From contig OZ316899.1 in assembly GCA_973895155.1 (NCBI GenBank), forward strand, positions 8,497,241-8,561,240: DNA of 64,000 nucleotides, read 5' to 3'. The translations under genes and the position numbers were made by a program. The notes under the pieces are model-generated. The model was not told the DNA's origin. It ran no database searches and saw only the letters and a list, made by a program, of their open reading frames with translations. Positions within the stretch are counted from its first letter, which is position 1, and each line of letters starts with the position of its first letter. Shown one piece after another: positions 35,291-58,321 of this stretch. Source of the DNA: Marsupella aquatica. Taxonomy: Eukaryota; Plantae; Marchantiophyta.

Positions 35291-35354
35291 CTCACTTGTC
35301 ATTATGCACCAAATCTTACACTAAAAAATGCAACACTTATCAGCCTATTCATTA

Positions 35355-35652
35355 AAAGTGTATTATTATTTAATTTATGTACATTTGGGCAATGAAAAAT
35401 ATATTTTTGGGCTTGGAAAAGTGTATATTTGGCCAATAAAGAGTGTACATTTGGGCAATGAAAAGTGTAAATTTGAACATCAAAATATGTACATTTGGCT
35501 TTAAAAGTGTACATTTGGCCTAGAAAGTATACATTTGAGTGAAAAATACATACATTCGACTTAAAAAGTGTACATTTAAGTGTATTTGGTCTAGGAAGTG
35601 TAACTTTTAGTGCAACAAAGTGTACATTTGGCCTAAAAAGTGTACATTTTCC
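35355..35652 (+). repeat. Left subterminal array of AAGTGTACATTT(G)
   Basis: About a dozen degenerate copies at ~22-bp spacing. Confidence 0.85.
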
Positions 35653-36237
35653 TACCAACTCTTATTACGGACTTCCATGAGAGGTCTCTTGCAAATTCCC
35701 TGCCACGAGGTTGTGCCACATTACCACAACCAGCCACAAACGTGCACATTCCTGTTTGTGGCAAAAACAACGTAATTTTGGGGGCGCCATGCCGTAAATA
35801 TTAAACGTCAAAAACCAAAATACAAAGGGAGATATGTCATTTAATAAAATAAAGTTACCATTTTGATGTTTGTCAAAGATATATCAGTGTTTTATATCAA
35901 AATGCTTATATTTTTTAATTGTTTGCAAGTTTGAAAAACCAACCAATAGAAATGTACATAGTTAAAACCCCTTTGGCTTCACATTGTAAAATTAAATAAT
36001 CAATCTCCTTAGTACTTGATAAAATTTGTCAATGTTTAATTCATTGAAAAACTCAAGATCAAGATTTAGAAACTCGTGACCTCTTTAGTAGTGTCTTGAT
36101 AAAATCTCTCAATGTCACACTCATTGGAAAACTAAAGTAAAATTAAAAACTCATCATCTCCTTGGAACTTGACAAAATCTATCAATGTTAGGTTCATTGG
36201 AAAGCTAGAGAAATTCAGATACTCATGATCTCTCTAA

Positions 36238-39200
36238 TGTTGAGCATAGACGACATTTGTAACGGCAAGTCCATGAACCATCCAACGCACAAGAGTCGAC
36301 ACAAAGAGATATGTGGTTCACCTCCACATGAGGTTACGTCCATGGGAACACACAATAGCTTTACTGCACTCTAAGCCGACCGCCCATACCAAGCATCCAC
36401 AGCACAAGCTCTCCCTATCTCTCAACTAACTCCGTAACAATGAGCCTAAGTTCCACCAGGGTCTAGCATCAGCCCTGGCTATATCCACAACAGCACTACC
36501 GCTAACATTAGCTAACTCCTAACCCGAGTTAGACTAACTATGGTTAGCTCATGAGTCACAAGACTAGAGCAATATCTAACAAACTCCCTCTTGACTCTTG
36601 TCTTGGGGACTAGACTAAATGCTACCATATGGAATCCTCAGCGGGAAGTTCTAGACAATCACCAAACCAGGTATCCCCCTAAAAACCACAAGGGTTAACT
36701 AAGGGTTAACTAGAACTAAGCCATAACCAAACAGGAATGAATAATCCATATACAAATAGTCACACATTGCTAAATAACTCTACTTGCACTACAACTGCAA
36801 AACCTGCAAAGTAGTACGGTGTCTTGAGAAACTCTCCAAAGGAATCACTTTGGTAAAGGCATCAGCAGGATTGAGCTTTCCATCAATCTTGACTAGCTCA
36901 AAAGTTTTATCAGACATTGTTTGCCTGATAAAATGGTACCTGATATCAATGTGCTTCACCCTGCTATCCATTACCTGGTTAGCAGCCAAGTGAAGAGCAC
37001 TCTAACTATCACAGTTTAAAGTCATTTTGTCATGTTCTAAACCCATCTTCGCGATCAACTTGTCCAACCAAATTGCTTCATTTGCTGCTTTTGTTGCTGC
37101 AACATACTCTGCTTTTGTAGTAGACTGAGATATACACTTCTGCAAGGTAGATTTTCAACTGATACATCCTCCTCCAAGAGTAAATACAAACCCAGTTGTA
37201 GACTTCCTTGTATCCAGACAGCCTCCATAGTCAGAATCTACATAGCCAACTAACGTTCTATCTTATCTGTTATCAAATAGTAATCCATAGTCCTGTGTTC
37301 CCTTCAGATACTTGAGAATCCACTTCACAGCTTCCCAATGTACCTTCCCTGGATTTGACATGAATCTGCTAACCTTGCCCATCGCTAGGGCCAAGTCAGG
37401 CCTAGTACAAGTCATCAAATATATCAGACTGTCTACTGCCTTCTCATAAGGAATCTTAGCCATTAGACCTTTCTCCACAGCATCCGTAGGAGAGAAAGCC
37501 GATGATAACTTGAAATGTGAAGCTAAAGGAATACTCACTGGCTTACAATTTTCCATGTTGAATTGTGCAAGTACTTTCCTTGCATACTGGCCTTGACTCA
37601 AACACAACTGTCCAGTATCAGAGTTTCTAAAAATCTCCATCCCTAAGATCCTCTTGGCCTTACCAAGATCCTTCATCTTGAATTTAGCACTCAATTTTGC
37701 CTTGAGACTGTGAACCTCAGATTGATCTTTAGTCACAATCAGCATGTCATCCACATAGATCACCAAAATGATGAAACCAAACACATCATTCTTGACTGAT
37801 TTTGTATACACACAATGATCATATACCATCCTTGTAAAACCTTGAGCAAGCATGAAATCATCAAACCGCTTGTTCCACTGTCTGGGAGACTGCTTCAATC
37901 CATACAAGGACTTGAGCAATCTGCAAACTAAGTTCTCTTGGCCCTTCTTCATAAAGCCTAGTGGCTGTCTCATGAAGATCAACTCTTCCAAGTTGCCATA
38001 GAGAAAAGCACTAACAACATCCATCTGATCCATCACCAGACCAAAAAACACAACAAACTGACACAGGATCCAAATTGTGGAATACTTAGCCACCGATGAA
38101 AAGACCTCATTGTAGTCCACTCCTTTCTCCTGAGTGAACCCCTTGGCAATAAGCCTTGCCTTGTAGATCTTGTCTCCACCCTCTGAAGGACTGTCCTTTA
38201 ACTTGTAAATCCACTTGCTGTCCATCACTTGCTGACCTCTTGGAAGCTCCACCAACTTCCTCTGCATTGCTGCATTCCACTCATGCTTCTGCTATGAAGC
38301 ACAAGCCTCATTGTACAAAGAAGGCTCTCCTTCTTCCAAGATCAAAGCCATATCATCTTCATCAGGTGCAATGTCCATATCATCTAGCTTAGATGAGTCT
38401 GTCCATTGACCATACCTGGTAGGAGCTCTAGTAGAACGACTGAAAGTTCTTCTAGTCGATGATTCAGGTTGATTTGTTGCTGCTGCTGGCTGAATTTGAG
38501 GTACCCCAACAACAATCTGCTCCTCTTGTTCCATCATAGGAACCAGCTCCAAGCTCGGAGCTTCTCCATCTCTCCTGTCATGAACAACATCATGACTAAT
38601 CTCCCCCTCAACCCGGTCCGGGATGAGAGATTTCCCCTTGTCAATATGGGAGTCCTGAGAACTCTCCCCCTCCTTTGATGATCTGGATTCATTAAAGGAC
38701 ACATCTCTACTGACAATTAGTGTACAGGTTACTGGATCTCACAACCTATAATCCTTCACACCTTTCTGATAGCCAAGGAAAATGCACTTCTTCGACTTGG
38801 ACTCTAGCTTGGATTGAAGTTGGGAAGGTGTAAGCACATTAGCATCACATCCAAAAATCCTCAGATGTGAGTAATCTGCTAGACGCCCGTACCTCATTTC
38901 AAATGGCGTCTTGAATCCAATAGAACTGGATGGAGAAAATTTTACCAAATAAGCTGCAGTGTTGACAGCTTCAGCCCAAAACTCATGTGGTAAGCATGAT
39001 TGACTCAACATACTCCTCGAGCGGTCCAATAGTGTTCGGTTGAGTCTCTCAGAAACACCATTCTGCTGAGGAGTATAACTTGTTGTGAGATGGCGGGTAA
39101 TCCCCTACTCCTTACAATATGTTCCAAATTCTCCGGAACTGTATTCACCGCCATTATTCGATCAAAGATATCTCACCTTATTACCAATCTGATTCTTTAC

Positions 39201-42200
39201 TTGGGCTTTCCGCTCCTTAAAAGTGGCAAAAACATCAGACTTATTGTGTAGAAAGTATATCCACACATACCTTGAGTAATCGTCTATGAACGTGACATAG
39301 TATAACCGTCCAAAATGTGAGGGAGTAGGGGCTGGATCCCACACATCACTATGTACATACTCAAGTACCTCCTTGCTGGTGTGAGTTCCAACTCCAAAGG
39401 ATTTTTTGTGCTGCTTCCAAAGCACACAATGCTCACAAAATTCCAACTTACAAGATTGCAAATTAGAAAGTAATCCTTTCTTCTGAAGAATAACCAAACC
39501 TTTTTCACTCATGTGGCCCAAACGGAAGTGCCATAGCCGGGCCTTCTCCTCATGAGATAAGGTTATATTGGCTTCATCACAAACTACACTACCCTCCAAA
39601 ACATATAGATTGTTATGTCTCTTTCGCTTCAATACAACTTTAGTACTAGTTGAAACCGTAAGGACACCATTAGCAGAACTCCACTGATGGCCATTTGCTT
39701 CTAAAACTCCAAGTGAAATGAGATTTTTTATCATGCTGGGAATATGTCTCACATTCCTAACATTCTTATAGCACCATCAAACATCTAAAATCTTACAGAT
39801 CCAAGTCCAACAACTTGACATGGGATTCCATTTCCCATCAACACTGACCCGTTAGAAACCATGTAAGAACTGAAAAAATCTCTCCTAGAACAAATGTGAA
39901 AAGTACATGCACTATCTAGAATCCAGTCATCACTACTTGGATTTGACACTACGTTGAGAGCATAACCTTGGCATCACAATATGTCATCACCATCGAGTAA
40001 ATCTACCTCATGCAAACTCAATGCCGCGTTAGCAGATGCAGTAGGGTTCTTTACTCGACAATCCCTTTTCATGTGGCCAGGCTTGCCACAATTCCAACAT
40101 GCAAGAGACTTCCTCTCTTGTGATTTCCCTCTGGATTTAGATCTCCCCCGTGATGTAGATCTAAACCTGTTCTGCCCATTTGAGCGCTACGCTGCTCTCC
40201 CACGGTTCACGTTTAGGAGAGTGCCAGAAGAAGATGTTGTCTGTGATTGACCCAACTTCTTCTGAGCATCATCAAACAGTAAAGAGCTCACCACCTCATT
40301 ATACGAAATGAACTTCAGATCTCTATACAAGAGCACCTATTTTAAGCCCTGATATGATGGCGGTAAGGAGCTTAGCAGAAGCAAGGCCTTATCCTCATCT
40401 TCAACTCTTTTTCCCAGGTTTGACAGATCCATCGCTAGACTGTCAAACTCATCTAGGTGATCCTGCATCTTGCTCCCTTCCTTGAGCCTGAGGCTTATCA
40501 AGAGAGACTTCTTGTATAGCCGGTCTGACGTATCTTCCCGGTAGTACTTCTCTTGTAGAGTCTTGAACAGTGATGCACAGTTCGCATAATCATCCAGCTT
40601 CTTGATGATGTGCGACTTGAGATAAGGCATCATTGCATTGACAGCAATCACCTGTTCCTCTCTCCACTGCTTCTTTGAGATCTCCTATTCTCCATCATAC
40701 TGCTCTCGTGAAGAGAGCAGATGAGCTAAGCCCATGGCCCAAAGAACACCCTTCACTTGCTTCTCCCATAGCAAGTAATCAATACGACCATCGTACTTCT
40801 CCACCTCAAACTTCACTCCTCCGAATCTAGCCATCTCCCTCTTCTTCCCCACTATCAATAGCTCTAGTAGTAGAACAGCTTCCTCCATTGCACGCTGCAC
40901 CGGTGATCATACCAGTGACACTAGTTCTTCCTCAAACGGTAGCAGCTCCTCCTCAAACTCTCCGTCTAACCTTCGCGATCCTGAAGCTTCACCGACACCA
41001 ATTCTTCCAATATCCTCCAAGTCACTCATATGAAACAATCACAAAAAAACGTCTTTTTTCAAAACTTCTCATAAAACTCATAACTCAACACTGCCGCGTA
41101 GTCCACGAAGCTAGGAGTCCAATATTGAAAGCCAAAATCAAAATCAAAATTTGACGAAAAATTTATTCAAATTTTGGTCGGGGTGGGTAAACCTTGGGAA
41201 ACTCCCCTGTTTTGACCACCTCAGGGAATAACCAAATTACCAAGTACAACCCGTTGTTGGAATCGCGATGTGATTGGTGCGTCGCGTTGCCAACTTCAAT
41301 GGCTACGTGCTCGCCAAAAAAGAACCAAAAACGTTACTGTTTGGCAGACAAAATCTTTGTCGGATGGCCAAAAAACAGCTCTCTATTTTTTGGGAATATT
41401 CCTGCATAGTCCGACAGGTCTCACAGGGGGCCGGTCCCCCTGTCGGGGAGGTTAAAATGGAGGGCGGCAGGTCCCGACACCAAGTTAAACAAGAGGGAGG
41501 AAAAAATTGTTATTAAAAGTGCCCTAAAGGGGGTGCTAAAGCCCCTTAACAAAAATATACACCTTAAAAATGCGCATCCGCGTCGCGCAGACGCGAGGCA
41601 GGCCAGGCAGGGTATAGAAAGGGCATGTGGTTGGGGGCCTACCCGAGTGGCTGCGTATGCAGCCACGTACGTACAGTCGGCGCGAGTGAGGCGGGGCAAT
41701 AACCGGCCGACAGCTTCCGATGGTGGCAGGGCCGCGCACACGCTAGGCTCAGGCGAGGAGCAAGGCCTCAACTTAACGGGGTAAGGAGGCTGGCCGGGCA
41801 AAGGAGGGTGACCTGGGGTTAGGCACGTCTCGGGCGCAAATAGGGACGTGGGGGTGCGGAGGGTAAGTAGTGGGCCGTGGGTGCGGGGCAAACATAAGGG
41901 CAGCTGCCGGGCGACAGATTTTGCGCCGGCCGGCGCTGCGATGTTCCTCAAGAAACGGGGGTGCGGGGGAGGGGGAAAACGAGTACACGGGGCCGGGGGT
42001 CGTGTGTTGGTACACACACAAGGGCCCAAGTTAACCCCCCTTAAAGCCAAAAAGCTCCCCCTAAAAAACTTGAATGGAAAAACTCATCAATTAAAGCCGC
42101 AGTTTGAAACAAAGAAAGTGAACGCCGCCGACGGAAAAAGTTTCCAAATTTCACCGGTACAGTCTGCAACTCCAGCATTGTAAAAGCTTCCACCGCGACA

Positions 42201-43105
42201 CCTTCACTCCGCGTCAAGTGCCAATCCCGGACTCAAAACGACCGTCTCGCCGTGATCAAACCGTTGAGCCGTAGCACTTCACGATTCTTCCACCGAGTTG
42301 GACGTCACGAAGAGTAATCCAGTTCAGGGAAAAACAACACCATAGCTTGTCAAAAAACCAGAACTCAAGTTTCACTCGTCACGATGCACTTGCTAACAAC
42401 TCGGCAGCAACTCAGCTACCAAAACGACCAGCTCGCTTCAACCTTCAACTTAAGCTATAATGTGCGATCCCTCCCGCACCGCATAGCTCACACCGTTGAA
42501 AACCGCAAACACTGGTCACTCCCCCAAAATACCATCGAACACAAATAAACCCTGAATGATGCAAACTTCAATTCCTCCGCACCACGGATACCGATCAGCG
42601 AGTTCTAACCACCGTTAGAAAGCCCTCTCACTAACCTATCTGCATAGCCGCATACATTCAAGTTTCATGCGACAAAACTCCGAATGTACCTCCGACAATG
42701 AACGTTGGAAAAAACCGTCACAAAAAAACCTCATCACCTCCCAGGCATGCTCTGATACCACTTATTGAGCATAGACGACATTCGTAACGGCAAGCCCATG
42801 AACCATCCAATGCACAAGAGTCGACATAGAGAGATACGTGATTCACCTCCACATGAGGCTATGTCCACGGGAACACACAAGAGCTTTACTGCACTCTAGG
42901 CCGACCGGCCATACCAAGGATCCACAGCACAAGCTCTCCCTATCTCTCAACTGCTCCGTAACAATGAGCCTAAGTTCCACCAGGGTCTGGCATCAGCCCT
43001 GGCTATATGCACAACAGCACTACCGCTAACATCAGCTAAGTCCTAACCCAAGTTAGACTAACTATGGTTAGCTCATGAGTCACAAGACTAGAGCAATATC
43101 TAACA
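36238..43105 (-). mobile_element. Full-length Ty1/Copia (Tnt1/Tork-like), decayed
   Basis: LTRs 36238-36581 and 42763-43105; TSD TCTAA (36233-36237, 43106-43110); PBS tRNA-iMet at 42749-42760; PPT next to 36582. Confidence 0.96.
36789..40835 (-). pseudogene. Copia gag-pol polyprotein with stops
   Basis: KFEVEKYDG..YLLW, LLLLSSLP, LWHFRLGHMSE, YVHSDVW, FIDDYSR, FWAEAVNTA, QMDVVSAFLYG, YVDDML, KHIDIRYHFIR, NPADAFTK. Confidence 0.96.
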
Positions 43106-45761
43106 TCTAATTCTTGACGAATAATCTCAATGTCACACATTAGAAAGCTAGAGAGATTGAAAACCTCATGATCTCTTTAGTATCGTGACAAAATCTGACA
43201 TGAAATTTGTCAATGTCGGACTCAATATTGGAAAGCTAAAAGAATTCATGGACTCATGATCAAAATTTCTTATACTCACACTCATTGGAAAGGCAAAGAA
43301 ATTCAAAAACTCATTTGGAACTTGACAAAATTTGTCAATCTGAGGCTCATTTGAAACCCTTTCTCGATTAAGAGATATCACAATCTCATCACTGTCACAA
43401 ACTTAGCCGTTGAAAATTGATTTCTTTGATTATGTTGCCATGCCTTGTCCACAATGCTTGCTTCCCGACTTGAATTGTTTGCATTCCTCTAGTCTTCAAC
43501 TGAAGCTCACTCTGAACATAGGTTGACGCCAAATGTAGCCTCTATGTCAAAGAAACAATTGTTGGTCTCCCCCTCACACCATAGCTTTCTTAAATTAAAA
43601 AACTACAAATCCTTCATGTGAAGCAATGGCTTGCTTGTTTTGTGTGTTCTTCCCACCAAATTGGCAAGCGCTCTTTCGCCATTAGCTAAGTGTTGTCCTC
43701 TAGTCTGTCTTGTGGCGGTAATGCTCAATGTAACTCACAAACGACCAATCAAGAATGATAGAAACACGATTTCTCCAATGTGTAAGCAAAAATCATCACA
43801 AAACTCAATTCCTCCATATTCAACCTTCCGTTGATAAATCTCCTCTATCTTTTGAGCGTTTTCTTTTGTACGAGCACACACCGAGACCATCGGGAGACTC
43901 AAAACCGTCGATTACCACCTTGTTGAAAATTGATTTCACTTCATCAAACACACATTCCTTGGATGAACATAGGGGTCCACGAATTAATTATAATCATTTA
44001 AAAGAAAGGAATGAATAGAAAAACATTTTTAATTATGTAGAAAAAGCAAACATTCATATTCATAATGATCAAAAGTTTATAAAATGAGGAGATAGTATCA
44101 CATTAAAACTATTAGAATAGTAAATAACTAGTACGTAAATTACTATGTTTGAATGAGTGACTATCTTAGTTACATAAAAACTAGTAACTATCTATTTAAT
44201 TATTATAGTTTCTAACAACTAAGTCTACTTGTCCATCCTTTGAAGATAATTTTGTACAGTTTGTAGAACATTTCGAGGGATCTTCAAACCTCTACCCGCC
44301 ATGTTTTCTTCTTTCATTTCAGATTTAAAACCATACATTGCAGAATTTGCATACTGCCAATGTTGAGTATTCTCACCAAACCCTGGATCTCGTTCCCATG
44401 TCTTAGTGGACATGAAACAATTTAGATACCGTGTACTCTCAGTCACATCAACTTTAGAGTGTTTAGGCCTCCACCATTCAATTGGGAACATTGGAGCGTA
44501 TTGCCGAGGCAGAGAAGGGTTTGTTGAAGATGTAGTTGGGACTTCATGCTTTGGGTCCACCAAACCCAAAGCTCTCACCAACCAAAAATGACCTCCGCCA
44601 TTTTTATTCTCCCAGTCATCCTCAGGTCGAAGAAATACAAAGTTTCCTTCACAAATATCCTGTAAGGGAATCCATCGTCCTTGTTCTCTCTTAGCTCGAG
44701 ATCCAACAAATGGTGCTGCTTGATCTTCCATCTCTTCCAAGACCTCATTTTGAAGAGCCGTCATCTCTGCATTCTCCTCATCTTCACTTGGAGGACCACT
44801 TTGTTCCGGTTGATTTACCTTGTAACCAGTGCCGTGGTTAGTCTTAGGCCAAAATCTGTTTTTCAAGGGAAATTGAGTACTTCCCTCCCCTTCTAGTGCG
44901 AGCCCATTTGTCAACAACTCCACAATTCTCTCCCAATATTTCACAAGAGGAAATCTTTCCTTATATGCTATAGATGTCTCATCAGTGCAACTCCTTCTCA
45001 AAAAATCAAGGTACTTGTTAAGAAATGGGATAATCTCTTCAAATTGTGTGTGTATCTCTCCAATGGATTTAGCTAAGGGCTCTCCACTAGGTAAAAGAAG
45101 AGAATTTGTTGTCAGATCTGTTGCCCAAATGCACCTTCCACCAACTGGAGCCCAAGCTTGCTTTACATGGGACTTATACTAAAATATTGGTACATTATCT
45201 CTCATAGAGAAAAGAATTGGTGACCTTGAATATCTTTCACCTTGAAAGTTTGAAGATATTCTTTGTAAGATGCAACTTCTTGTATCAATCTGGGAACTGG
45301 ATGAATGCTCTCGCATACCCATACCTCTGCCATAAGAGCAAGGAGGGTTGCAACTTCTTTGTGCTGAACTTGATATGATACCTTTGAAAAGAGTGCATCA
45401 ACATCTTCGTGCGTATGACCAACCATTAGAAAAGACATTTGAACAGTTTCAAATACTCCTCTACTCACAAGCTTGCTACAAAATGCCATGACAGTCTGGT
45501 TTTTGTTCTCCTTTGCTAAATTATCCATCTGCAATGTTAGGTGCCTTGGCAAGGGCTTGAACAATGGACTGCCTTGCTCTCCATGCATGTCTTCTTCATC
45601 ATCCTCATCTTGCCGGTTTGGGACGGTCTCAGTCCGACTCTCAGCTCCATCTTCGGAACCAATATACCTATTCACCGGTATATTCTTTGGCTCCAAATAA
45701 CCCGTCAAAAATGCTTCAAAGTCAAGTAGGGCTTGAAAGAAAGGTCTGTGAGGTTCCCAAT

Positions 45762-47388
45762 CACTAGTACAGAATTCACCTTTAATCCAATTCTCCTCAA
45801 ATCGGACCCCTTCGGCGGATTGTTGTAGCTTTTACCGATGTTCCGATTGAAGTCGCATCGTATCATCCAATCCCCAAACAATCGGGTTAGCGTTATCGGA
45901 TCGAGATTGGACTTGTCCAATTAAACTAGTATCGGAAAGACGCATTCAATTCAAAAGAAATGGCAAACAATTGTCCAATTATGTGAGAATGGCATGACCA
46001 TTTCCAAGTACTTCGCAATCGGAAACTATTGTGCTATTGTACTACAATGGGACAGGGGTCCCAATTAGAATCAAATCAAAAATTGAAGTGCGATTACCCC
46101 AATTGGCGGCCCTAGCGCTGCCCCGGCCTGATCCTACTCCTCCACGGGTTGCATATCACTAGCTAACTGGTGTATTCTTTTGTGTGAGGCTTCAAGTCTT
46201 AGCAAGACTGTGGGCTACTAGAGATGTGGGCTACTAGAGAAGTCAGGTCACCCATCCCAAACACTATTCCTCTCAATAGGTGCTTAACTTCCTAGTTCTT
46301 AGCTCTTGCGTTGTACATGCAACCTTAGGCACATTTGATGTTTCTTATAGAGTGCCTGGGGTTTTTATACACCTCTGAGTTCATGTAGATCCACAGTTTG
46401 GGCCAATTCTTGATGAATTCTTGCGTATCATGACATTGGGTTGCGTGGTCAATTATGAAAGCTCTATGTTGACCATATGGGAACCAATTTACCTATCAAT
46501 GTTAGATTGCCAAACAAACCAATGTCCTCCTCAAATTGCTACAATTCCTTTTGGGGCGTGGTTAAGTTCATTTAGGGATTCAATATATATAGAATTTTGA
46601 CCTAGATGACAATGAAGACAACTATATTTGTTGACCGCAAGAATTTTTTTCATCGAGTCAAAAGGCTTTGACTTACAATTTAACGAAAACTTTTGGTAAC
46701 CATTATAGGGTAGTGCATTGTAAAGATAGGAATGGCCATTGGCATAAGATTTCTCATCCTAGGAACACAGACTACAAAGGCTATGCTACACATGATCCAG
46801 GACCGGTCAATACTTTCCATGAGCAAATGAGGGATGACCCTGGCCTTGCCAAAGGTTCCAATTCTAAATGAATCGTAGACACACTTCCAATTCCCAAAGA
46901 GTTGGACCACAAAGTCCATTGCACCAACAATTGGACCAAGATCTCATTGTATTTGTATTGCAAATATGAATCCCATTGCCTACCACTTGGAAACAATTGT
47001 CCAATCCTGAAAACCTTGGAATATCCAATTCCATGCGCATCGAAAACTTCCAATTTGTATTGAATGGCAACTTCCAATTCCAATTTGATCGGAAAATGTG
47101 CTTACGTTTTTCTTTGGAAAGGGGTTCCAATTCATCTAGCATTGGAGAAGAATTGGACCAAGCGGTCCAATTGTTTCTGGCTTTGACAAACAATCCAACT
47201 TTTCCTACATCGTAGTGACGGCCCGTTTGTGATTGGGTTGGAATGGTGATAGTCCGATTCTAGTTTAATGGCAAGGTCCGATACGCATTGGCTTGGACGG
47301 TTGGATCGTACATCCAATTAGAATAGAATCGGAAACCTTGGCATCATCGGAAGGTGAGAATCGGACTAGGCCCCAAAATGTACTAGTG
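45762..47388. mobile_element. Non-autonomous CACTA element
   Basis: TIRs CACTAGTACA / TGTACTAGTG; 3-bp TSD AAT (45759-45761, 47389-47391); CCGAT/CCAATT subterminal motifs; interrupts the transposase. Confidence 0.93.
46104..46395 (-). other. 5S-promoter-containing, Cassandra-LTR-like segment
   Basis: Minus strand AGAACT....AGTTAAGC-N24-GGATGGGTGACCT (46299-46245); segment bounded by TG...CA; no TSD found. Confidence 0.6.
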
Positions 47389-49651
47389 AATGAAGGCCAT
47401 CCAACATGTCACTTGTCTTGTCGCCATTGTACTCTTCAAGGTCTCGAAGATACTTAGCCAAGGATGTCACCGTGAAATTGGCATCTCCTAGCCAAAGGCC
47501 AATGACACTAAAGTGTGCATAAACTCTTGGATCCCTCCCGTGGGTCAACATCCCTGTGAGAGCAATAGGTAGCGGCATTCCATGACCCAAAAGAGATTTA
47601 GGAGTACTAACCATTTTTGGAATCCATGTCTTTGCTTGATCCATCTTGTTGTGAATAATGCAAAGATATTCTCTTGGGTGTTGTTTGGCCATCACTCGAT
47701 GAGCGTAGTAAACATATCTACCTGACATTTGCTCACAAAGATGTTGCGCTCATTTTTCTTCAATTTTAGCACGTTCTTTTTTCCTTCTTTCTTGCATCAA
47801 ACTGTCTTTGTATTCACAACAAAGAGTACACTTGGCAAATGCACCATCTTTATGAAAACTGAAGTTTGCAAATGAGTTGTTCCAGATCTTGTAGAGAGTA
47901 TTCTCTGTGACAGGAGGAAGCCCTTCTTCCTTCATCTTTGTTCTCACATCTTCTAGAATCTCTAGCTTCTTGTAACACGCCGAAAGACGGTACTCAATAG
48001 AGTCTGTCCCATATGCCCCTCCATAAGGCATATGAGGCATGGGCTCTGCATTTCAAGTCAAAAAAGCCTCCAATCGTGCATGCAAGGTATTTGCCCTTGT
48101 TTTCATCAAGCCCGTATTGCCATGGAACCCAATTTTGCAACCCTCCACATATCTCCTTTTGTAATCATAATATTTGGTGTGGCTAAAACGGTGGATAATT
48201 GCAAATGCATGTCTGCATACAACCATACCCTTAAGAACATGGTGTCCCTTATCACGAACATCATCCTCTCTATAGTGAAAGACGTTGAAAATGTTTGACA
48301 TTTTTGACTCGCTTGACATCCCATGAAATTCCATCCTAATATCTTCAATGTTTTCCCTTGGCATAATGAGACAACATTTTTGCTTGCAACAATTTTCTCT
48401 TTTCACGTCATCAATTGACGCCTCTGTTGTTTTTGAAATTGCCTTGGTTTCCAACAACCTCCTCTTCTTTTCATTTGGATCTACTTGATTCCTCTTGTTA
48501 AAATTGTAGGGCCTTGAACGCAGTACTCCTCTATCACTTACATCCGCATTGAGTTCATCCCTATCCATTGAGTCCATCCTCTCAGAACCTTCCACCAAAA
48601 CGTCTGACAAAATTTTCCATTTGCAACTAGTTTTGTTGAATCAAACCGCCATCAAATCAAACTCACTACTCCCTTGTGGATGTTGGGAAAGTATTGTGAT
48701 GCCACAACATCTTTCATAGCAATCCCAACATGGTCATCAACAAGAATTTCATCATCAACTACCCCCGTCACTTGAGGGACAATGATCGTTCCAGTGGCAA
48801 CCATTTTGGTTCGATCCAAACCAGTGTAGAGTTCAACCAACTCTGACATCCAGTTTGCCCGATGAAAATATTCACACTTAGTGTCTGTGGTGTTCACCGA
48901 ACAAGACTGTGAAACAAAATCCGCCTTGTCGTTCTGCTTCTTAGAGGAAGATTTGTTGCTCCCATCGATATCAACATTCCATACTTTATTGTGGACGTCA
49001 GCCACATCCCATAGAACCCAGGAGCCCTTTGCCTCTTCAATTGTTGCAGCTCCACCATGTGCGTAAGGTAAAGTCTTACTACCATGAATCACATATGTGA
49101 TTTTTACACTAACCCTAGACTCACCAAGTAATATGTTATGACATCTCTCCATTGGATCAGTCTTGAAAACAACTCCAAAGGCCACACAATGGCCAGAGAT
49201 AAACATTTCAACCTCATCGCCTGGCCTTAGGGTGGTCGAAGCATCCTCCTGTACATTTGCAGAATTATGGATGTTGGTATCTTTTCGAGTCGAACAACTA
49301 CCAATACTGATGCGTTTTTGAGTAATCTTATCCGCAAATTGATATGCACATGACATATCCCAAATGACACATGAGTCAATGACATCATGACGATTTTCCG
49401 CCCTAGGCATTGGAAAAGGGAGCTTCCTGGTCTCACCAAAGGCCTTCTCAATGAGAACCCCAATTCGATTCTCTCCCAACACAATATTTTGAACACTCTC
49501 TCGCGGATCTATCTTTTGAACTGTCCCATTTCCAACGTCATAACCATCCATTGTCAAGGTCACATCATCGCCCCTAGAAAACCTTTGAGACATCCTTTTC
49601 CTACTATCCTGCACACTGAAAAAAATGGATTAAAACCAAAGTCGAGCAAAT

Positions 49652-50370
49652 TTTGATTCGGACTGCAATCCTCCAAGTCTGGATTTGGACTACGATCCTC
49701 CAATTCCAGATTTGGACTAGGACCATCCGAGTCCGGATTTGGACCGAGACCATCCAAGTCCGGATTTGGACTACGATCCTCCGATTCTGGATTTGGACTG
49801 GGGCCATCCGAGTTTGGATTTGGACCGAGAGTATCCAAGTCTGGATTTGGACTGCAATCCTCCAAGTCTGGATTTGGACTACGATCCTCCGATTTTGGAT
49901 TTGGACTAGGACCATCCGAGTCTGGATTTGGACTGCAATCCTTCGAGTCTGGATTTGGACTATGATCCTCCAATTCTGATTTTGAACTGGGACCATTTGA
50001 GTCCGGATTTGGACTGGGACCATCCTAGTCCAAAGTTGGACTAGGACCATCCCAATCCAAACTAGGACTCGGACCATCCCAATCCAAACTAGGACTTGGG
50101 CCAACCCAATCCAAACTAGGACTCAAACCATCCCAATCAAAACTAGGACTTGGACCATCCAAGTCCAAAGTTGGACTCGGACCATCCCAATCCAAAGTTG
50201 GACTCAAATGATCCCAATGCAAAGTTGGACTCGGATGCCCGCTCGGATGATCCCAATGCAAAGTTGGACTTGGATGATCCCAATCCAAACTTGGACTCGG
50301 ATGATGCTAATCCAAACTTGGACTCGGATGATCCTAATCCAAACTTGGACTAGGACCATCCTAGACCAAC
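49652..50370. repeat. 27-bp minisatellite with a palindromic core
   Basis: About 26 units related to TTGGACT(A/G)GGACCATCC(C/T)AGTCCAA. Confidence 0.92.
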
Positions 50371-51159
50371 CCATGATGTAATGGGGGATAAACAAAAATC
50401 CAAATTTAGGAAGACTCCGTATTTTACGGATCTCCCTATATAGTGTAGCCTAAAGTTTGCGTGGTCTTAAGACAGACCCTAATGTCTACATACAATTTCA
50501 TGAAATAAAGGAACCTTATACTCACCTTAGTATTAAGATCTGGTAGAAGATGAATATCACATCCAAGGGGTATACATTGTTGTCTGTAGATTGGTAAAAA
50601 CTTTCCCAGAACCTTGAAATACAAGCTATATGCCACTAAATCTTGGGAGTAAAAAACAAACTGAACCCTAAACCACACATGTCTGTAAAAGATAAACTGA
50701 GAGGACTCCAAAAGTCAAGAAGCTAGCTAAGCTGACCCATTGAAGGTAAGTGGCTCAATACATAACACTTTAAGAGAAACTCTGGATTACATGGAGCTTA
50801 GATTTGGGAAACTAGAACAAGAATGAGCTCCGAAGTGGGCGTCTCCCAAATTATACCCTTTGCTCAAGTCGACTCAAACGGAAATCGCATGAAGATAAGG
50901 GTCGAGTACCCCTTCACCTTAGCTTGCAGTCACACCTTATCTTCACGAGCCTAATTGCGCGGGGACTACCATGCAAGGCTATTAGGTAGGCAGGACATCA
51001 AGGAAGGAGGCCCATATGCAAGGTGAGGGCAACGGGCCAAATGCAGGAGCAGGCCGTACGTAAGATCAGGCCGTACACAAGAGAAGGAGGCAACCGGCCG
51101 TACGCAGGCCGGGGTGAGGTAGGAGGGGGTAAAGGGACGGAGAGGTCCAGCCAGGACCT

Positions 51160-51340
51160 CATTCTCATTCTCTCACTCTGAGACTCCTTGCTCTCTTGCT
51201 CTCCTCTCGCTCTCCTCCTCACTCTCCTCCTCGCTCTCCTCCTCGCTCTCTCGCTCTCCTCCCGCTCTCCTCGCTCTCCGCTCTCTCTCCGCCTCTCCGC
51301 CTCCCCGCCTCCACCTGCCTCCGCCTTCCGCCTCCACCTC
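51160..51340 (+). repeat. CT-rich low-complexity tract, probably 5' leader of the plus-strand cargo gene
   Basis: (CTCTC/CTCGC)n run upstream of the plus-strand ORFs. Confidence 0.6.
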
Positions 51341-51750
51341 CATTATTTTTCATTGCCCAAGATTGGACGCCTGCTAAGATGCCACGTGTCACGCTGTCAT
51401 GCGTCAGAAAGATGGAAGTGAATTGCGTCCTTGTGATGTCCTCCGTGGAAGAAACGGAGGAGTTTGACCTCTCCTCTATGAGCGACAGTGTAGAACTGGC
51501 ACTTGAAGACTCCAGACAATTTCAATCACGAATCCCTAGTAAGTATCCATCACCTATCCTCCCTAAGTCTTAGAGGACTTGGATGGTTGGACTCGGATGA
51601 TCCCAATCCAAACTTGGACTCGGATGATCCCAATCCATCCAGGAGATTGAATCCCGATTGTAGGAGCAAGTCTAAAACCCTCTCAAGTTGGACTAGGACC
51701 ATCCTAATCCAACAAGAGTTATTCAAATGTTTTAAAGGTTTTAAGTCTAA

Positions 51751-52387
51751 CATGGATGACGTTTATGATGTAGGGAGCGATCTTGTTGGTTTCAAACCCG
51801 TGATTGCACCGACCAACTGCCTGGACGGATTCTTACTAGATGAGAGATCCCCAAGCTTCCGATGGGGGCTTGAGTTCTCAAGAACCCCGCTTAATAATGA
51901 AGTGCCATCAACCATGATTGAACCTATTTTGACCTTAAAGTGCAGAGCAAATGATAGCCTGACTTTTGTTTGTGGACCTGTGGTCTCTGTTGGCATTGGA
52001 GGGAGAGGGATGATTTCGGTCATTTTGGAAATGCACGATAGGTCTTGTTGGGTTAAAGTTAACCTTCTGTCAAAGGCATACTCCTCTGAATTCAATGTTG
52101 AATGGCACGCAAGTGGGGAATTGAGCATTTTGTCAATGGGATTTTTTCCAAAGACCTATGACACAAAGAAGTTGGTCGCCAGGGTAACTGGTATGCTTCC
52201 AGTCGACATTATGTATGGGTTTCAATATTTGAAACTCAACATGATGAAGCACCAAGGCAATTTCTCTTTTGCAACTACTTGGACGTTAAGCAATTTACTT
52301 GAGAAAGCTGGATTGTTATCATTGGAGTCGGAGGAGCCTGGTGTTTTAATTAATAAGGATGTAAGTTGCATTTGCTCCCAAGTTTGA
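51751..52387 (+). CDS. Unknown ORF/exon inside the DNA transposon
   Basis: Open frame 51503-52387 with protein-like composition from the ATG near 51751; no motif recognised. Confidence 0.4.
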
Positions 52388-52405
52388 TTTAGTCAAAGCA
52401 AAGCA

Positions 52406-55400
52406 ATGGATAGAATCTTAAGTTTGTCCAAGACGAGAAAGCTTCCAGCGGTGAATACAAACCCCATGCCTGAGCAAGCGCCAAAGAAAGCTCCAGAACC
52501 TACAATAGAGACCGCGGGAACTACAGCAGCGACCTCTCAAAGAGCAATGGGAAAACGAAAACAAAGCCAAAGGAAACCTCCGGTTGAGAAGAAACTTCCA
52601 GTTGAGAAGCCGGTTGAGAAGCTGAGTACGAGAAGCCAAGTTGAGAAGCCAGTTGAGAAGCCGAGTACGAGAAGCCGAGTACGAGAAGCCGAGTACGAGA
52701 AGCCGAGTACGAGAAGCCGAGTACGAGAAGCCGAGTTGAGAAGCCAATTGAGAAGAAACGTCCGGTTGAGAAGCCAAGTGCAAGTGGAAAGAGGCCAAGA
52801 CAGAAGAAGAAACAGAAAATTGACAGTGCCATCATGGATGACACTACAAAAAACCTGACAGTGCATTCACAAGATGTGGACGAGCAGTTGGACACTCCTG
52901 AGGAGAAGAAGGTCTTAGAAGGTAATGAGGTACTACAACAAATGGAGCAATATTATACGTTTGGGATCAATTCGATATTTTCTATTCCCGTAGAGAGTAT
53001 TTTCCCTGCGTCGGCAAGACTCTGTTACAGAATGTTGAATGCAGACCATGTAAAGGAGGTGGCCAATTCCATGATAAGAAATTTGGGGCATGAACCACAC
53101 ATAGCAGACTTGATTCCTTACACTGCAAAACATAGAAACCTAATGCAGTATGACAACATGAAATCAGATAGGAGGGACTTTGTAGTAGCTGTGAAAAAGG
53201 GCGAGGTTCAATTCCTTGCCATTAGCGGTCAACATTCGGCTAGAGCAGCTAGATGGATTCGAGAATGGGCAAACAAGGATGCCAAGCTAACAACATTGGC
53301 AAAAAAGCTGGAATTTTGAAAGTCAAGAATATTATCTCATCGAATACCATCGTCAATATTAGTTGAGCATTCAATGCAATCTAATGCTATCAATAGCATG
53401 ATGGTGTTTCAGTCATGCTTCAAAGATACACTCGTTCATGCTAGGCGACAATTTGTGGAATGTGGAAGACCTAGCCGGCCAAAACATGGGGACAACAAAA
53501 CAAACGCTCAAGACAATCAAAAATTTCAGGTACAAAGTGTTACTGCTTGATGGGTACAATACCGTAGACTCTCCATATGTGGTTACAATTGAGATGGTAG
53601 TCTTTGACCACAAAGCTTCAAGTTTGGTTTGGATTGAGATGGTCCAAGTCCAAATGGATACATGCACATTAAGTAGAATATTTCCACTGATATCGTCTAG
53701 TTTTGTGTTGGACTGGGATGGTCCCAGTCCAAATGGATTCATGCACATTCAATATACTATTTCCATTGATATCGTCTAGTTTTGTGTTGGACTGGGATGG
53801 TCCCAGTCCAAAATGCATTCGATCGTACACATTCAGTAGAATATTTTTCCATTGATACTGTCTAGTTTTGTTTGGACTGGGATGGTCCCAGTCCAAACTA
53901 AATCATGCACATTCAATAGAATATTTCCACTGATACTATCTAGTTCTATGTTGGACTGGGATGGTCTCAGTCCGCACTTGAGTGCTTTCAAACAATTGAG
54001 TTATGGAGAACTAACAGACTTTCCTTTGCAATTGTAGGATTGGTTGGCTCTTGCAAGAATGACCATGGGAAGGAAAGATTGTCGAAATGTTTACTGGTTA
54101 CTGTTTGCAGACAATGCTCTTTTTGATTTATGGAGTTTGGTATGCCAATTGTGGTTGGATGGGAAACTTCCCGATGGAGCTGGGGTAGAAGGAAATGAGA
54201 AGTCTGAAAAAGCAATTACCATTGCCATGTTTTGTTGTTTTGATGGTGAGTTGATCTCACAACGAGACATCACAAGAATACTGATGCGGGTGAAGTCAGG
54301 AAAGGTATTGCTAAAGAAAGATGCCTCTAATAAATCAGACATGCCATCTATAGAGGAGTTGGCCAAAGATGTGAAGATCGTGCGGAAACTGAAGTCCCTT
54401 ATTGAAGACTATTATTGCACCAAGGATGCGGTGAATTTCCCAACAAATACTAATTGGGGGAAAGTAGTTGAGGTTCTTCCTACGCTAGCAATTGATTCAG
54501 AGTTCAGCAGGTGTCGAAGAGCCGCTGGCGAGGTCTATCTTGCCAACCTTTTAAAGCCAAATCATACGCGGGAGAGCGCAATCTTGCCGACAACATTGGT
54601 ATTCTGCCTAGATGATATATACTCCCAGAGATTTGGCGGAGGATCACGTTCTCGGACCCTACCATGGGTTACATGTTTTAGCGACAATCTCATGAAGACC
54701 ATTGATCCAGAGTCATTGCAAGAAGCTCCTCCGACCTGCCCTCTTGCCATTGTTGATTTTAGCCGGCTTCCGCAAAAATAGTGGACTGAAGCAGAGATTC
54801 TTGTTCTCTTTGAATACATTGTGGAGCTTCCACAAAATCCCACGATTGTTGTGACGATAACAGTTCATCCTGGACAACTTGCATTGAATGTCCATGGTGC
54901 CCTTCGTAAATTGGGACAAGAGAAAGTTTTGACCATTCATATTGAGTATGGGAGTTATTCCCAAGATGATCAACCGCACCCTCATGACTCATGTTGGGGT
55001 GGGGGGATTGAAGAAGTTATCTTTGCGGGGATTTCTCGAGATGAAGATGTCAATTGGAATGAAGTTTTCAAGCCCAACTATCCAAAGCCAAAATTCTTGT
55101 AAACTTCAAAGGATGTTGATTACGAAGTATGCAAGATCGACAAGGGAAAGGCTAAGGAATCAGATGAGGGAACACAAAACGATGACCTAAAAGTGGTTTT
55201 GGACCTGGAAGAGGCCGTCAAGATTATGAATATGGCCCCTCGATTTGAGACAGTTGGCAGTCGTGGAGGGTGGGTTAATGCTCATGCCAAACCCACGTAG
55301 ATGATCCGAAGGATTATTGAATCCTTGTCAGAACCGGGAGATTTGGTTCTAGATTTTTTCTCTGGTGGCCAAGTCATGAAGACATCATTTTTTTGCGATA

Positions 55401-56404
55401 GGGAATGATTTGTTTATTGTGACTCTCAGTCCAAGAGGCATTTTGTGGAAGCTTTTGCTTCCTACCTTTGCAAGAGAGTTCCCTCACTTAAAGCCCATTG
55501 TAAATCACTTGCTGAAAATTCTTGACAATGGGCTACCACTGTTGCGGCTGTAGCTGTCGGTGTTGAATCCGACGGTTCTGAGTCTGAAAATGTTGCTGAC
55601 AAAGTGGCTGAAGGCGTAGAGGCATCAGAGGAGGCATATGTCAAGAATTTGGATGATCGTGTTGGTCAAGGTGAGCCTTACGATGTAGATCATGATATTG
55701 GACTTGCACCAAACCGTTCATCTAGTTTAGATGACATCCCTCTAGGGCCCAATGAAGTTCAAGTTGATGATAACTTGGACAAGGATGATCCCAATCCAAC
55801 AACGTTGGGAGGACAGATGGAGCAAATGGAAGGGGAAAGGGTTGATACGTTTGATCATCTTTCTTCAACCAATCTGATCAATGAAGGTGCAACAAGGCTT
55901 GGAGATTCAAATGAAGCTGAAACTCAAGAATTGACTCGGGGGGAGACTGGTGGATTGCCTGACATTCCCATCAATCCAGGAGAAAATGCATCAACGGTTG
56001 TTGACAACCAGGCAGGTGCTTCAACTTGTCCTAACACACTCTTTTCAGCTTTTGATGACAAATTGGTGTTCGTTTGTTCACACTCGGGGAGTCCTGTTGT
56101 CCTTCCGCTCTCAAAAAAGAAAGGGAATAGAGTTGGATCAACTGGATGGAGGTCATTGGAATGCGATGCACGATGTTATGTGTGGAAAAGTGGGCCAAAT
56201 CAAGGCCAAGAAATATCATTGGATGCTGCTCCTTCAATTCTCAATAAGGAGGAGTATAAGAGGGGCGAATTGGGGTTGATAACTCCTGTTTGGACTTCAC
56301 CTTATTGGGTAGAACAAAGTACTTCAAATGTCAATTTTGAAATCCAACAGGAGCTTGGTGTTGACATGATTATTGATGAATACGGATCTCTTATTTCGGA
56401 ATGA
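52406..56404 (+). pseudogene. Cargo gene: basic repeat N-terminus, ParB/Srx-like domain, N4C/N6A methyltransferase-like fold, acidic tail
   Basis: YRMLNADHVKEVANSM...FLAISGQHSARA (ParB-like). Intron 53530-54037 (GT, CTAAC, AG) keeps the frame. One frame 54038-56404 with a few stops contains AKPT*MIRRIIESLSEPGDLVLDFFSGG at 55286-55369. Confidence 0.72.
53620..53975. repeat. Intronic ~78-bp tandem repeats, each carrying the 25-bp palindrome
   Basis: TTGGACTGGGATGGTCCCAGTCCAA recurs 4-5 times. Confidence 0.88.
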
Positions 56405-56669
56405 AATTCAGCCTTTGACTTTCTATTTATTCATATCAATCTAAAATACTTCTCGGTCTCACAGAATGCGCTCACCAATTAAAGTCTCCATATCCGTCTA
56501 CACATTGTGCGGCTTCTAAAAACAGTATGTAGGTTAATTTTCTTTTTTTCAGCCACTGTCTTGTATTTTTGGACTGAGACAATCCTAATCCAAAGTTCAC
56601 TTTTGGTCTTTTCTCTGAGAATGGTGTTTGGTGCACTTGTAGAATTGAGACCTGGTCTCGTCAAGCTAG

Positions 56670-57307
56670 CGGAAGTTGCTGATTTTGGACCTTAATAAAA
56701 TACTTTGGGATTCTATTGAATTCCAAAGCAAGGGCACATCCAGGAATATTGTCACCTCAAGTGGAGTGCATTGGGATAGAAACAATGGTATTAGTCGCAT
56801 GTATACAGAACGACCAGGGCTCCATGAGTTTCTAAAGTTGGTTTTTGACAGATTTGACGTTGCAATTTGGACATGTGTTGGGATCCCACAAACAATGAAA
56901 TGTTGAACATGATGTTCACTGATGAGGAGAGGTCAAAACTCCAGTTTGTATTCACACAGGTGGAAGCTTTTGACACAGGCATTCAAAGGCGTGACATTAC
57001 AAACGAAAAGACAAATGTGCTACCGAAGGATTTTCAGGTGGTATGGAATGCATTTGGAAATCTATATGATGAAACCAACACCCTCCTTGTGGATGACTCC
57101 CCCCTTAAGGCATTTGTCAACCCAGACATGACCGGATTATTTCCAGTGCCCTACACGCATGCCAATCGTGGAGATAATTTTCTTCTAGCAATTCTTTGGC
57201 CATGTCTTGAGAAACTATCACATGCAAGTAACATTCGATGTTATCTTCTTCTCAACTCTCCAAAGTGGTCTCTTTTGCACATGAAGAGAGACAAGGCAAA
57301 AAAATGA
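56670..57307 (+). pseudogene. FCP1/NIF-family HAD phosphatase-like domain
   Basis: RKLLILDLNKIL, ERPGLHEFLKLVFDRFDVAIWT, KDFQVVW, NTLLVDDSPLKAFVNP; frameshift near 56880-56900. Confidence 0.85.
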
Positions 57308-57780
57308 GATTACTTATGATCAACTTAGCAAGAGATTTGCATCAAAAATTTGGAAGTCACAATTTACGCATAGTGTGTTGGACCTCAACAACAATGAGAT
57401 CCCTTGGAATGTAAAGCACCGTATATGTAGTTTACGTCCTGAGGCGAAACTTGACAATGCACTTGTCAACTCACTTGCTAAATCATTTTTAGGAAAGGAC
57501 TATTCAGGTCCATATAGAGAAAATCTCAGACACTTTTTGCGAGAGGTTATAGCCATTAGGAACAACACCACTAGATTTCAACTCCCTAAAAATAAAGGGC
57601 GTTGCAACCATGACAATAGGGTAGATAGGAAAGGAGACAGGGGCACATGCTCAAATACACATTGTACGGAGCACTTGGTTTAGATATTTAATTGACTTGT
57701 GTTAAGCCCCTTGGATAGTACTAGAAATATGTTTGTATTCATTGTAAATTTGCAGATAATTGTATAAAGATATTTTATAA

Positions 57781-57903
57781 TCTATTTGGAATGATGTTAC
57801 TTTGTTCACATAGTATCTGGTCCTTAAATGGGGATGAAATATTCTATTTGGAATGATGTTATTTTGTTCACACAGTATCTGGTCCTTAAATGGGGATGAA
57901 TAT
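57781..57903 (+). repeat. ~62-bp tandem duplication
   Basis: TCTATTTGGAATGATGTTA...CCTTAAATGGGGATGAA occurs twice. Confidence 0.9.
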
Positions 57904-57997
57904 TTTTATAAGTTCCTATCCTCCACTTCTTTGTGAATTATTAAATAAAATAATATTTATTATTTATTAATATAATACTAATGTGATTTGGCCTATA

Positions 57998-58076
57998 AAG
58001 TGTACATTTAGAGACACAAAAGTGTACATTTGGGTGTCTTGAAGTGTACATTTGGGGCCATGAAAGTGTACATTTC
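57998..58076 (+). repeat. Right subterminal array of AAGTGTACATTT
   Basis: Four copies at ~22-bp spacing next to the right TIR. Confidence 0.85.
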
Positions 58077-58321
58077 AAGACTCATTTGTGAATAAAAGAA
58101 AATACACTTTTAATGAATAGGTTGATACTTGCAAATTCTCCTCACGGACTTGCTAGCCCGCTCTCTCCTGCTCCGCCCTCACGTCCCTTGTCCCAAGTGA
58201 CCACAAGTTGCCTCAAAACATTGAGATGAGCCAAAGAGTGAGCCCGCAATGCTTCGCTACACCAAGACTCATTTCCAGGTTGGCAACATTTGGCCGCCCT
58301 CCCCATTTCCTTCACAAAAAT

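Follow-up and report, generated by a model that had tools for sequence, protein, structure and literature searches.

A transposon is usually pictured as a transposase between two ends, and the typical Sola1 element fits that picture, being 2-9 kb long and carrying a transposase only (sources including PMC10741241). The Sola group is defined by a DDD transposase together with a target-site duplication (TSD) of 4 bp (PMC10741241), and the hallmark target of Sola1 is AWWT (PMC3845634). The DNA considered here is a stretch of 64,000 nucleotides from contig OZ316899.1 of the liverwort Marsupella aquatica (hereafter the window, to whose numbering positions refer unless another locus is named). What it contains at 35339-58126 is very probably, by identity and anatomy, a single old and now inactive member of a Sola1-group transposon family that reaches high copy number in liverworts.

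The original prediction for this locus started from the premise that Sola elements are as a rule described as carrying a transposase only, a premise that has been outdated by Sola1-1_Ec32 of the brown alga Ectocarpus (PMC12477816). That element is 21.5 kb long and bears, on the opposite strand, a gene for a 1104-amino-acid (aa) protein with ParB-like and N4C/N6A methylase parts (Genome Biol 2025, PMC12477816). Like the liverwort family, it is a giant Sola1 with a 4-bp TSD, a transposase signature of the form QxDN...ENKN...MVGHTHxxIDxxFS and an opposite-strand accessory gene of ~1100 aa, the last likeness being one of published annotation and not of compared sequences. It differs in its AACCG... 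termini and its terminal inverted repeat (TIR) of 282 bp, nor has it been reported to carry a phosphatase-like second gene or palindrome arrays. The liverwort accessory proteins in question, the products of what we call gene A, depart in turn from the N4C/N6A methylase canon in having no DPPY. Sola1-1_PPa of the moss Physcomitrella (Repbase) and the Sola1 elements of animals share with the liverwort family the Sola group, the 4-bp TSD and the DDD transposase. Unlike typical Sola1 elements, however, the family has a core of ~14 kb with two accessory genes, and it meets the AWWT target loosely.

A second comparison is offered by Plavaka, a CACTA-related element of the red alga Bostrychia, in which the PAG3 gene (ParB-like plus 2-oxoglutarate (2OG) oxygenase) lies beside tandem inverted-repeat arrays, and whose authors proposed that PAG3 binds and modifies its own transposon (bioRxiv 10.1101/2025.02.11.637652). 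Plavaka and the liverwort family both pair an accessory protein of ParB type, putative in the liverworts, with inverted-repeat arrays inside the element. They differ in transposase superfamily and in host (an alga, not a land plant), and the domain joined to ParB in Plavaka is a 2OG oxygenase, with adenine methylase and SET domains on a separate gene.

In ParB-parS and KorB-operator systems, palindromic sites of 13-16 bp or more, often clustered, are recognised by proteins that bear a ParB N-terminal domain, and KorB uses sites at promoters to act as a repressor. Phages and plasmids also encode fusions of ParB with an N6_N4 methylase, in which ParB precedes a beta-class methylase, the same order as that of the ParB-like region and the methylase fold in gene A. 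The liverwort family stands apart from these systems as a eukaryotic nuclear transposon with no significant ParB match in sequence or fold; furthermore, its methylase motif IV is lost, and its sites are 22-31 bp long and diversify between lineages.

Literature searches found no liverwort report of such a Sola1 family with cargo. The liverwort host group and the second, phosphatase-like gene appear to be new, and so does the combination of palindromes that differ by lineage yet keep their positions with the loss, conserved among copies, of the canonical catalytic motif from each accessory protein; the two 'enzymes' seem to have become binders. The prediction of an undescribed multi-gene element with a regulatory toolkit holds as to the several genes, whereas a package in part like it was published from Ectocarpus in 2025, and the toolkit stays conditional, both enzymes being without canonical catalytic motifs. 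What the family adds is a three-gene, 14-kb Sola1 kept in a land-plant lineage, with two accessory proteins and their probable DNA sites co-inherited in compared lineages that include Marchantiopsida and Jungermanniopsida. It extends the brown- and red-algal observations of 2025 to bryophytes, and provides a concrete, testable model of the way in which a transposon might distinguish its own copies from related ones and communicate with the transcription or silencing of its host.

Termini and gene order of the mobile unit

The interval 35339-58126 measures 22,788 bp and is one TIR element with nested insertions. Its arms, ATCAGCCTATTCATTAAAAGTGTATT at 35339-35364 (+) and, as the reverse complement ATCAACCTATTCATTAAAAGTGTATT, 58101-58126 (-), are identical at 25 of 26 positions and 89% identical over 35 nt. 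The same four letters, ACTT, form the left TSD at 35335-35338 (CACTT followed by ATCAGCCTATTCATTAAAAGTGTATT) and the right TSD at 58127-58130 (AATACACTTTTAATGAATAGGTTGAT followed by ACTTG), so that the 26-bp TIRs and the 4-bp flanking repeat are as predicted. The expected subterminal arrays are likewise shared by the two ends: nine copies of a ~22-bp unit with the core AAGTGTACATTTGG are present on the left (35378-35651, +) and four, in the same orientation, on the right (57990-58084, +). In the whole window AAGTGTACATTTGG has 14 matches where 0.57 would be expected by chance, and 13 of these are at the two element ends. The subterminal repeats at 35419-35651 and 57998-58077 are all on the plus strand, an arrangement also seen in copies from the liverwort Calypogeia fissa, which gives the element an intrinsic polarity even though its termini are inverted.

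Two nested elements account for the rest of the length. Subtraction of 6,873 bp for a Copia and 1,630 bp for a CACTA leaves a core of 14,285 bp, in line with the ~14 kb first estimated; in other words, a core of ~14.3 kb has been swollen to 22.8 kb.

Six loci in two other liverworts have this transposase together with its cargo, arranged in the order of the window: in C. fissa L001 and L002, reached by a search with the ParB-like open reading frame (ORF), and further L005 and L006, and in Riccia sorocarpa L003 and L004, reached via transposase relatives. The full gene order is kept at L001, L002 and L005 of C. fissa and at L003 and L004 of Riccia. Protein identity to the window gene set is 40-70% for L001 and L002 and ~25-40% for the Riccia loci. 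The L005 copy is complete (L005:1267-15178; 13,912 bp): transposase, gene A and gene B all lie inside a pair of TIRs (ATCACAGTATTCATTAAAAGTGGAC, 24 of 25 positions matching) flanked by ATAA/ATAA. An independent TIR pair thus encloses the whole gene set with a TSD distinct from that of the window, so that the check proposed with the original prediction is passed, and the terminal consensus ATCA-N4-ATTCATTAAAAG is common to the window, C. fissa and Riccia copies. These observations show the family to be a single mobile unit with TIRs, 4-bp TSDs, a transposase of ~1250 aa and two divergently read accessory genes.

It could be objected that each end comes from a different short element, or that the whole is a Tc1/mariner-like inserter at TA, with the genes merely juxtaposed. 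Taken alone, the window would allow a TA target with a TIR shorter by one base. In five other ends, however, the base after ...TGA is always T while the next is C, C, G, G or A; with the terminus read as TCA..., the right flanks would be TC (the neighbour of L001), TC (L002), TG (L003), TG (L004) and TA (L005), instead of TA throughout. Since the T is constant and the base after it varies, ATCA/TGAT belongs to the TIR, and the TA target is refuted. The co-occurrence of transposase and cargo between the ATAA/ATAA-flanked termini of L005, with the same set at L001-L004, speaks against two unrelated ends of MITEs (miniature inverted-repeat transposable elements). Moreover, the window holds no second internal TIR. 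A comparison of the element flanks with its interior, made as a check for MITEs or nested self-insertion, gave similarity at chance level, and no empty site is present within the window. We therefore give the juxtaposition of unrelated ends almost no weight and treat the interval as one element.

The family is abundant. Contigs from four public DNA runs contain thousands of its pieces at 90% identity or above (at least 90%), and it is therefore highly repeated in at least two organisms.

Several arrangements at the other loci deserve mention. At L001:3170-3230 exactly 4 bp (CTTT) lie between the right terminus of a related member and the left terminus of the L001 copy, which suggests an insertion beside a resident copy or into its duplication, or else a dimer joined tail to head. 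The right arm of the L001 copy lacks its last 45 bp, TIR included, and in the same arm (L001:15560-15900) there is an inserted GC-rich stretch whose translation resembles part of a ribosomal-protein-type coding sequence. At L006 (6489-9651 and 18887-21474), gene A is followed downstream by two gene B-like copies, 35% and 65% identical to gene B of L001, an arrangement that suggests nested or adjacent family members.

Transposase and placement in Sola1

On the minus strand, 44228-49593 is occupied by a Sola1-type transposase pseudogene with a DUF7869 core. The window ORFs match DUF7869 at an E-value of 3e-35 and align to residues 4-1245 of P0009, a relative of 1250 aa; DUF8039 is also present in relatives of this transposase. 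D673, D820 and the GHTHEDxD block (P0009 numbering) are invariant across 19 diverse relatives, and D862 is probably the third acidic residue. The minus-strand DDE transposase of the original prediction is thereby borne out, both in the DUF7869 core and in the conserved acidic residues.

The signature ...VQVDNTVAENKN...MMVGHTHIQIDQIFS... is common to the liverwort transposase and the Sola1-1_Ec32 transposase in the supplement of PMC12477816, the match (Q.DN...ENKN...MVGHTH..ID..FS) being a motif-level comparison made by eye. In the rest of that supplement, the Sola2-1_Ec32 fragment included, GHTH was not found apart from one unrelated low-complexity match. The same source gives Repbase Sola1-1_PPa of moss as the best blastp match of Sola1-1_Ec32, and a TSD of 4 bp (PMC12477816 supplement). 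The family is placed in Sola1 because of this common signature, the DDD residues and the 4-bp TSD, and the 4-bp TSDs and the signature also uphold the expectation of a Sola-type cut-and-paste element.

Accessory genes and palindrome arrays

The plus-strand genes span 51.5-57.7 kb. Three had been predicted here, but there are two: the ParB/methylase-like gene begins with the 'unknown ORF', which at L001 and L005 forms one ORF with the ParB-like region. We modelled gene A exon by exon, by reference to other copies. Modelled exon 1 (51750-53529, +; start approximate) contains an N-terminal 'U2' domain (51851-52300, +), a K/E/P-rich linker with 14-bp repeats and, after it, the ParB-like region (52855-53496, +). 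A modelled intron (53530-54030, +) follows, with approximate boundaries taken from the annotated splice of C. fissa P0228. Exon 2 (54031-56404, +), in a single frame, encodes a helical region, a beta-class amino-methylase fold and a conserved C-terminal domain. In other copies U2 and the ParB-like region are one ORF (380 aa at L001, 399 aa at L005), the helical, methylase-like and C-terminal parts are one ORF of 596-767 aa (L001, L005), and the P0228 annotation splices the end of the U2/ParB-like exon to the next exon across a palindrome cluster. Gene A therefore encodes a single protein of ~1100-1200 aa and has at least one intron. Within the linker, 52577-52755 is a microsatellite-like repeat of 14 bp / 39 bp (GAGAAGCCGAGTAC...), the length of which varies by 48 and 192 bp in contigs of other copies. 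Apparent joints in the aligned sequencing contigs are variants in repeat length and not introns.

The methylase-like part is recognisable by several approaches. It matches PF01555 with 27.4 bits (cut-off 26.7) and M.RsrI at an E-value of 4e-4. An AlphaFold2 (AF2) model of this part has a pLDDT of 62.7, with the core above 80, and its best Foldseek matches are MboIIA, CcrM, HpyAVI, RsrI and the rotifer N4CMT (E-values of 3e-8 to 1e-5), with a probability of 1.00 to MboIIA, CcrM, HpyAVI, RsrI, N4CMT and PvuII. The circular order of motif IV, target recognition domain (TRD) and motif I, as in beta-class N6A/N4C methylases, is also present. Of the predicted ParB/methylase-like gene, then, the beta-class methylase half stands on PF01555 and Foldseek, whereas the ParB assignment was not confirmed by any profile, BLAST or fold search. 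The resemblance of the ParB-like region lies in its ADLIPY and FLAISGQHSxRA blocks, which are (nearly) invariant and which by eye recall ParB box II and DGQHR.

A clear beta-class fold raises the question as to whether gene A encodes an active DNA amino-methyltransferase that acts on the palindromes of its element (at N6 of adenine or N4 of cytosine) as an epigenetic self-mark. Binding and modification were indeed proposed for the accessory protein of Ectocarpus Sola1-1 (PMC12477816). The motif I region GDT(V/I)LDFFSGGQ and the acidic strand end that follows it are conserved, so S-adenosylmethionine (SAM) binding may persist. On the other hand, the canonical motif IV, (D/S)PP(Y/F), is absent from window gene A and from the aligned homologues. 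After strand beta-4, all Jungermanniopsid-type homologues that cover the position have DF[SGTA]R in its place, and Riccia has DLTH; in the window the motif reads DFSR (54755-54766, +). Motif I is itself atypical, DFFSGGQ near 55340 (+) having its second glycine shifted (GGQ for GSG). We consider an active methylase unlikely, and favor a role in binding.

Palindromes are the second constituent of the accessory system. The palindrome of the window is TTGGACTNGGANNNTCCNAGTCCAA; its 22 matches, where none is expected, are confined to 49685-56593. A 27-bp tandem array of the family palindrome lies directly upstream of the transposase start (49574-50403), and three sites are located just upstream of gene A (51587-51712). 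Five more fall in the modelled intron of gene A (53629-53975), one within its coding region (55775-55799) and one in the gap between gene A and gene B (56569-56593). The palindrome had been described as scattered through both arms; this is correct for the central spacer and the right arm, but it does not occur within the transposase body. Each lineage has its own sequence, of 22-31 bp: GAGCCTCGATACSGTATCGAGGCTC at L001, GTCGCCTCGAGAyNrTCTCGAGGCGAC at L002 and L005, AAACCTCACGATSRTCGTGAGGTTT at L006, and GCTTCGGGACGCGTCCCGAAGC and GCTTGGCGACGCGTCGCCAAGC at L003 and L004 of Riccia. The neighbour element at L001 carries a further type, GAGGGTAGAGATCATCTCTACCCTC (L001:2153-2556). Three places are conserved, namely the divergent promoter region, the intron of gene A and the stretch that separates the two accessory genes. 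Such fixed positions with diverging sequences are the pattern that would be expected of sites co-evolving with a binding protein encoded by the element.

Gene B (56670-57683, +) encodes an FCP/SCP (NIF) phosphatase-like domain with a Cys/His-rich tail. Its pieces in the window match NIF (PF03031) at E-values of 4e-6 and 9e-7, while L001 gene B is one ORF of 353 aa that covers the full-length NIF profile (E 3.5e-15). The closest solved relative is UBLCP1 (3shq; E 3e-5). The FCP1-like plus-strand gene of the original prediction is thus confirmed in its NIF domain, though the catalytic DxDxT is absent, being replaced by DLNKI in the window and C. fissa and by DIEGL in Riccia; the nucleophile Asp and a DDSP motif are retained. 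No domain was found to be shared among the transposase, gene A and gene B. In each of the four public runs, summed contig depth over the NIF-like part (56725-57315) was several times that over the remaining cargo. Shorter derivatives or other families of elements may contain this segment as well, though contig depth is a poor measure and gives a hint only.

A comparison of L001 with L002 yields an omega of 0.10-0.27 in the transposase as well as in each segment of the cargo, and between copies synonymous differences are saturated (pS 0.5-0.9) at a nonsynonymous pN of 0.1-0.45. The cargo is therefore under purifying selection. The ranking by identity is the same for all three genes (L005 > L002 > window > Riccia), and they have therefore diverged together. 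These values bear on the view that the cargo consists of passengers captured from a host or virus (Pack-type), with no role in the life cycle of the element, and that the palindromes are satellite-like repeats. Captured genes are often found in giant transposons (PMC12477816), and the want of catalytic motifs in both 'enzymes' would be as in decaying captures. Nevertheless, Calypogeia, Riccia and the window genome all have the same two genes in the same order beside the transposase, with proteins that are 35-80% identical, and the saturated synonymous sites and low omega are not those of passengers. The non-canonical motifs are themselves conserved, and the palindromes change in sequence between lineages while their three positions stay. 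A passenger origin without function is accordingly improbable in our estimation, and a role of the cargo in the element is preferred.

What this role might be can be sketched by analogy. The transposase would bind the TIRs and subterminal repeats, and cut and paste with a 4-bp stagger. As a tentative proposal, which may well need revision, the gene A protein would recognise the palindromes of its own lineage, as ParB and KorB do parS and operator sites, and would control or mark its own element alone, by binding rather than methylating, while gene B would supply a phosphatase-like protein that binds or modulates the machinery of transcription or silencing. A bolder and somewhat more doubtful reading is that the palindrome arrays and the ParB-like/pseudo-methylase protein could form a self-recognition (specificity-group) module, with which each Sola1 lineage might regulate, shield or assemble its own copies. 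The pseudo-C-terminal-domain (CTD) phosphatase would then tie the module to RNA polymerase II or to the silencing machinery. The likeness would be to the plasmid ParB/KorB-site pairs that define incompatibility groups.

A number of points weigh against these interpretations. The placement in Sola1 rests on motif comparison and not on a tree with reference Sola1/2/3, and the 4-mers (paired ACTT and ATAA; single flanks CTTT, CTAG, GTCT and GTGT) fit AWWT loosely, at few sites. Every copy inspected has at least one lesion, and none among them is demonstrably active; among the public runs with family pieces, all are DNA-like and none provides RNA evidence. With respect to the ParB-like region, Pfam gave a match to DndB alone, in two of ten members and at a sub-threshold E-value of 0.0048; nothing was matched in PDB profile searches, in PHROGs or NCBIfam, or by tblastn with phage and plasmid sequences as the target. 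The AF2 model of this region has a pLDDT of 40.8 and is unusable for a fold search. The link between protein A and the palindromes is drawn from position, analogy and the published annotation of algal relatives.

Decay, nested insertions and surroundings of the window copy

This copy is dead, a pseudogene-ridden relic and, as such, a fossil of the accessory system. Its transposase is frameshifted near 48514-48610 and near 45214, contains in-frame stops and is split by the CACTA. Exon 1 of gene A is interrupted by stops at 52385 and 53317 and by a frameshift near 52834-52856, and exon 2 by in-frame stops at 54779, 55100, 55298, 55406 and 55523. Gene B has 1-bp indels at ~56897 and ~57298 relative to other copies in the public runs. 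Where it differs from these other copies, the window tends to have A or T in place of a family G or C, as cytosine deamination in a silenced repeat would produce.

The larger of the two nested insertions is a Copia long terminal repeat (LTR) retrotransposon on the minus strand (36238-43105; TSD TCTAA). Its TG...CA LTRs (36238-36581 and 42763-43105) are 93.9% identical, and its domains follow one another on the minus strand as gag-pre-integrase, rve and RVT_2. It splits an array of ~80-bp tandem repeats of the host element, which runs at 36009-36237 and resumes at 43106-43366. The smaller insertion is a non-autonomous CACTA of 1,627 bp (45762-47388, -; TSD ATT) with CACTAGTACA...TGTACTAGTG ends, which interrupts the transposase core.

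Outside the element, a large LTR element extends over ~21.7-33.6 kb, with LTRs at 24059-25717 and 31931-33591. A solo-LTR-like stretch in the right flank (58322-59962) is 78% identical to these two LTRs, and the Sola1 copy ends ~200 bp from it.

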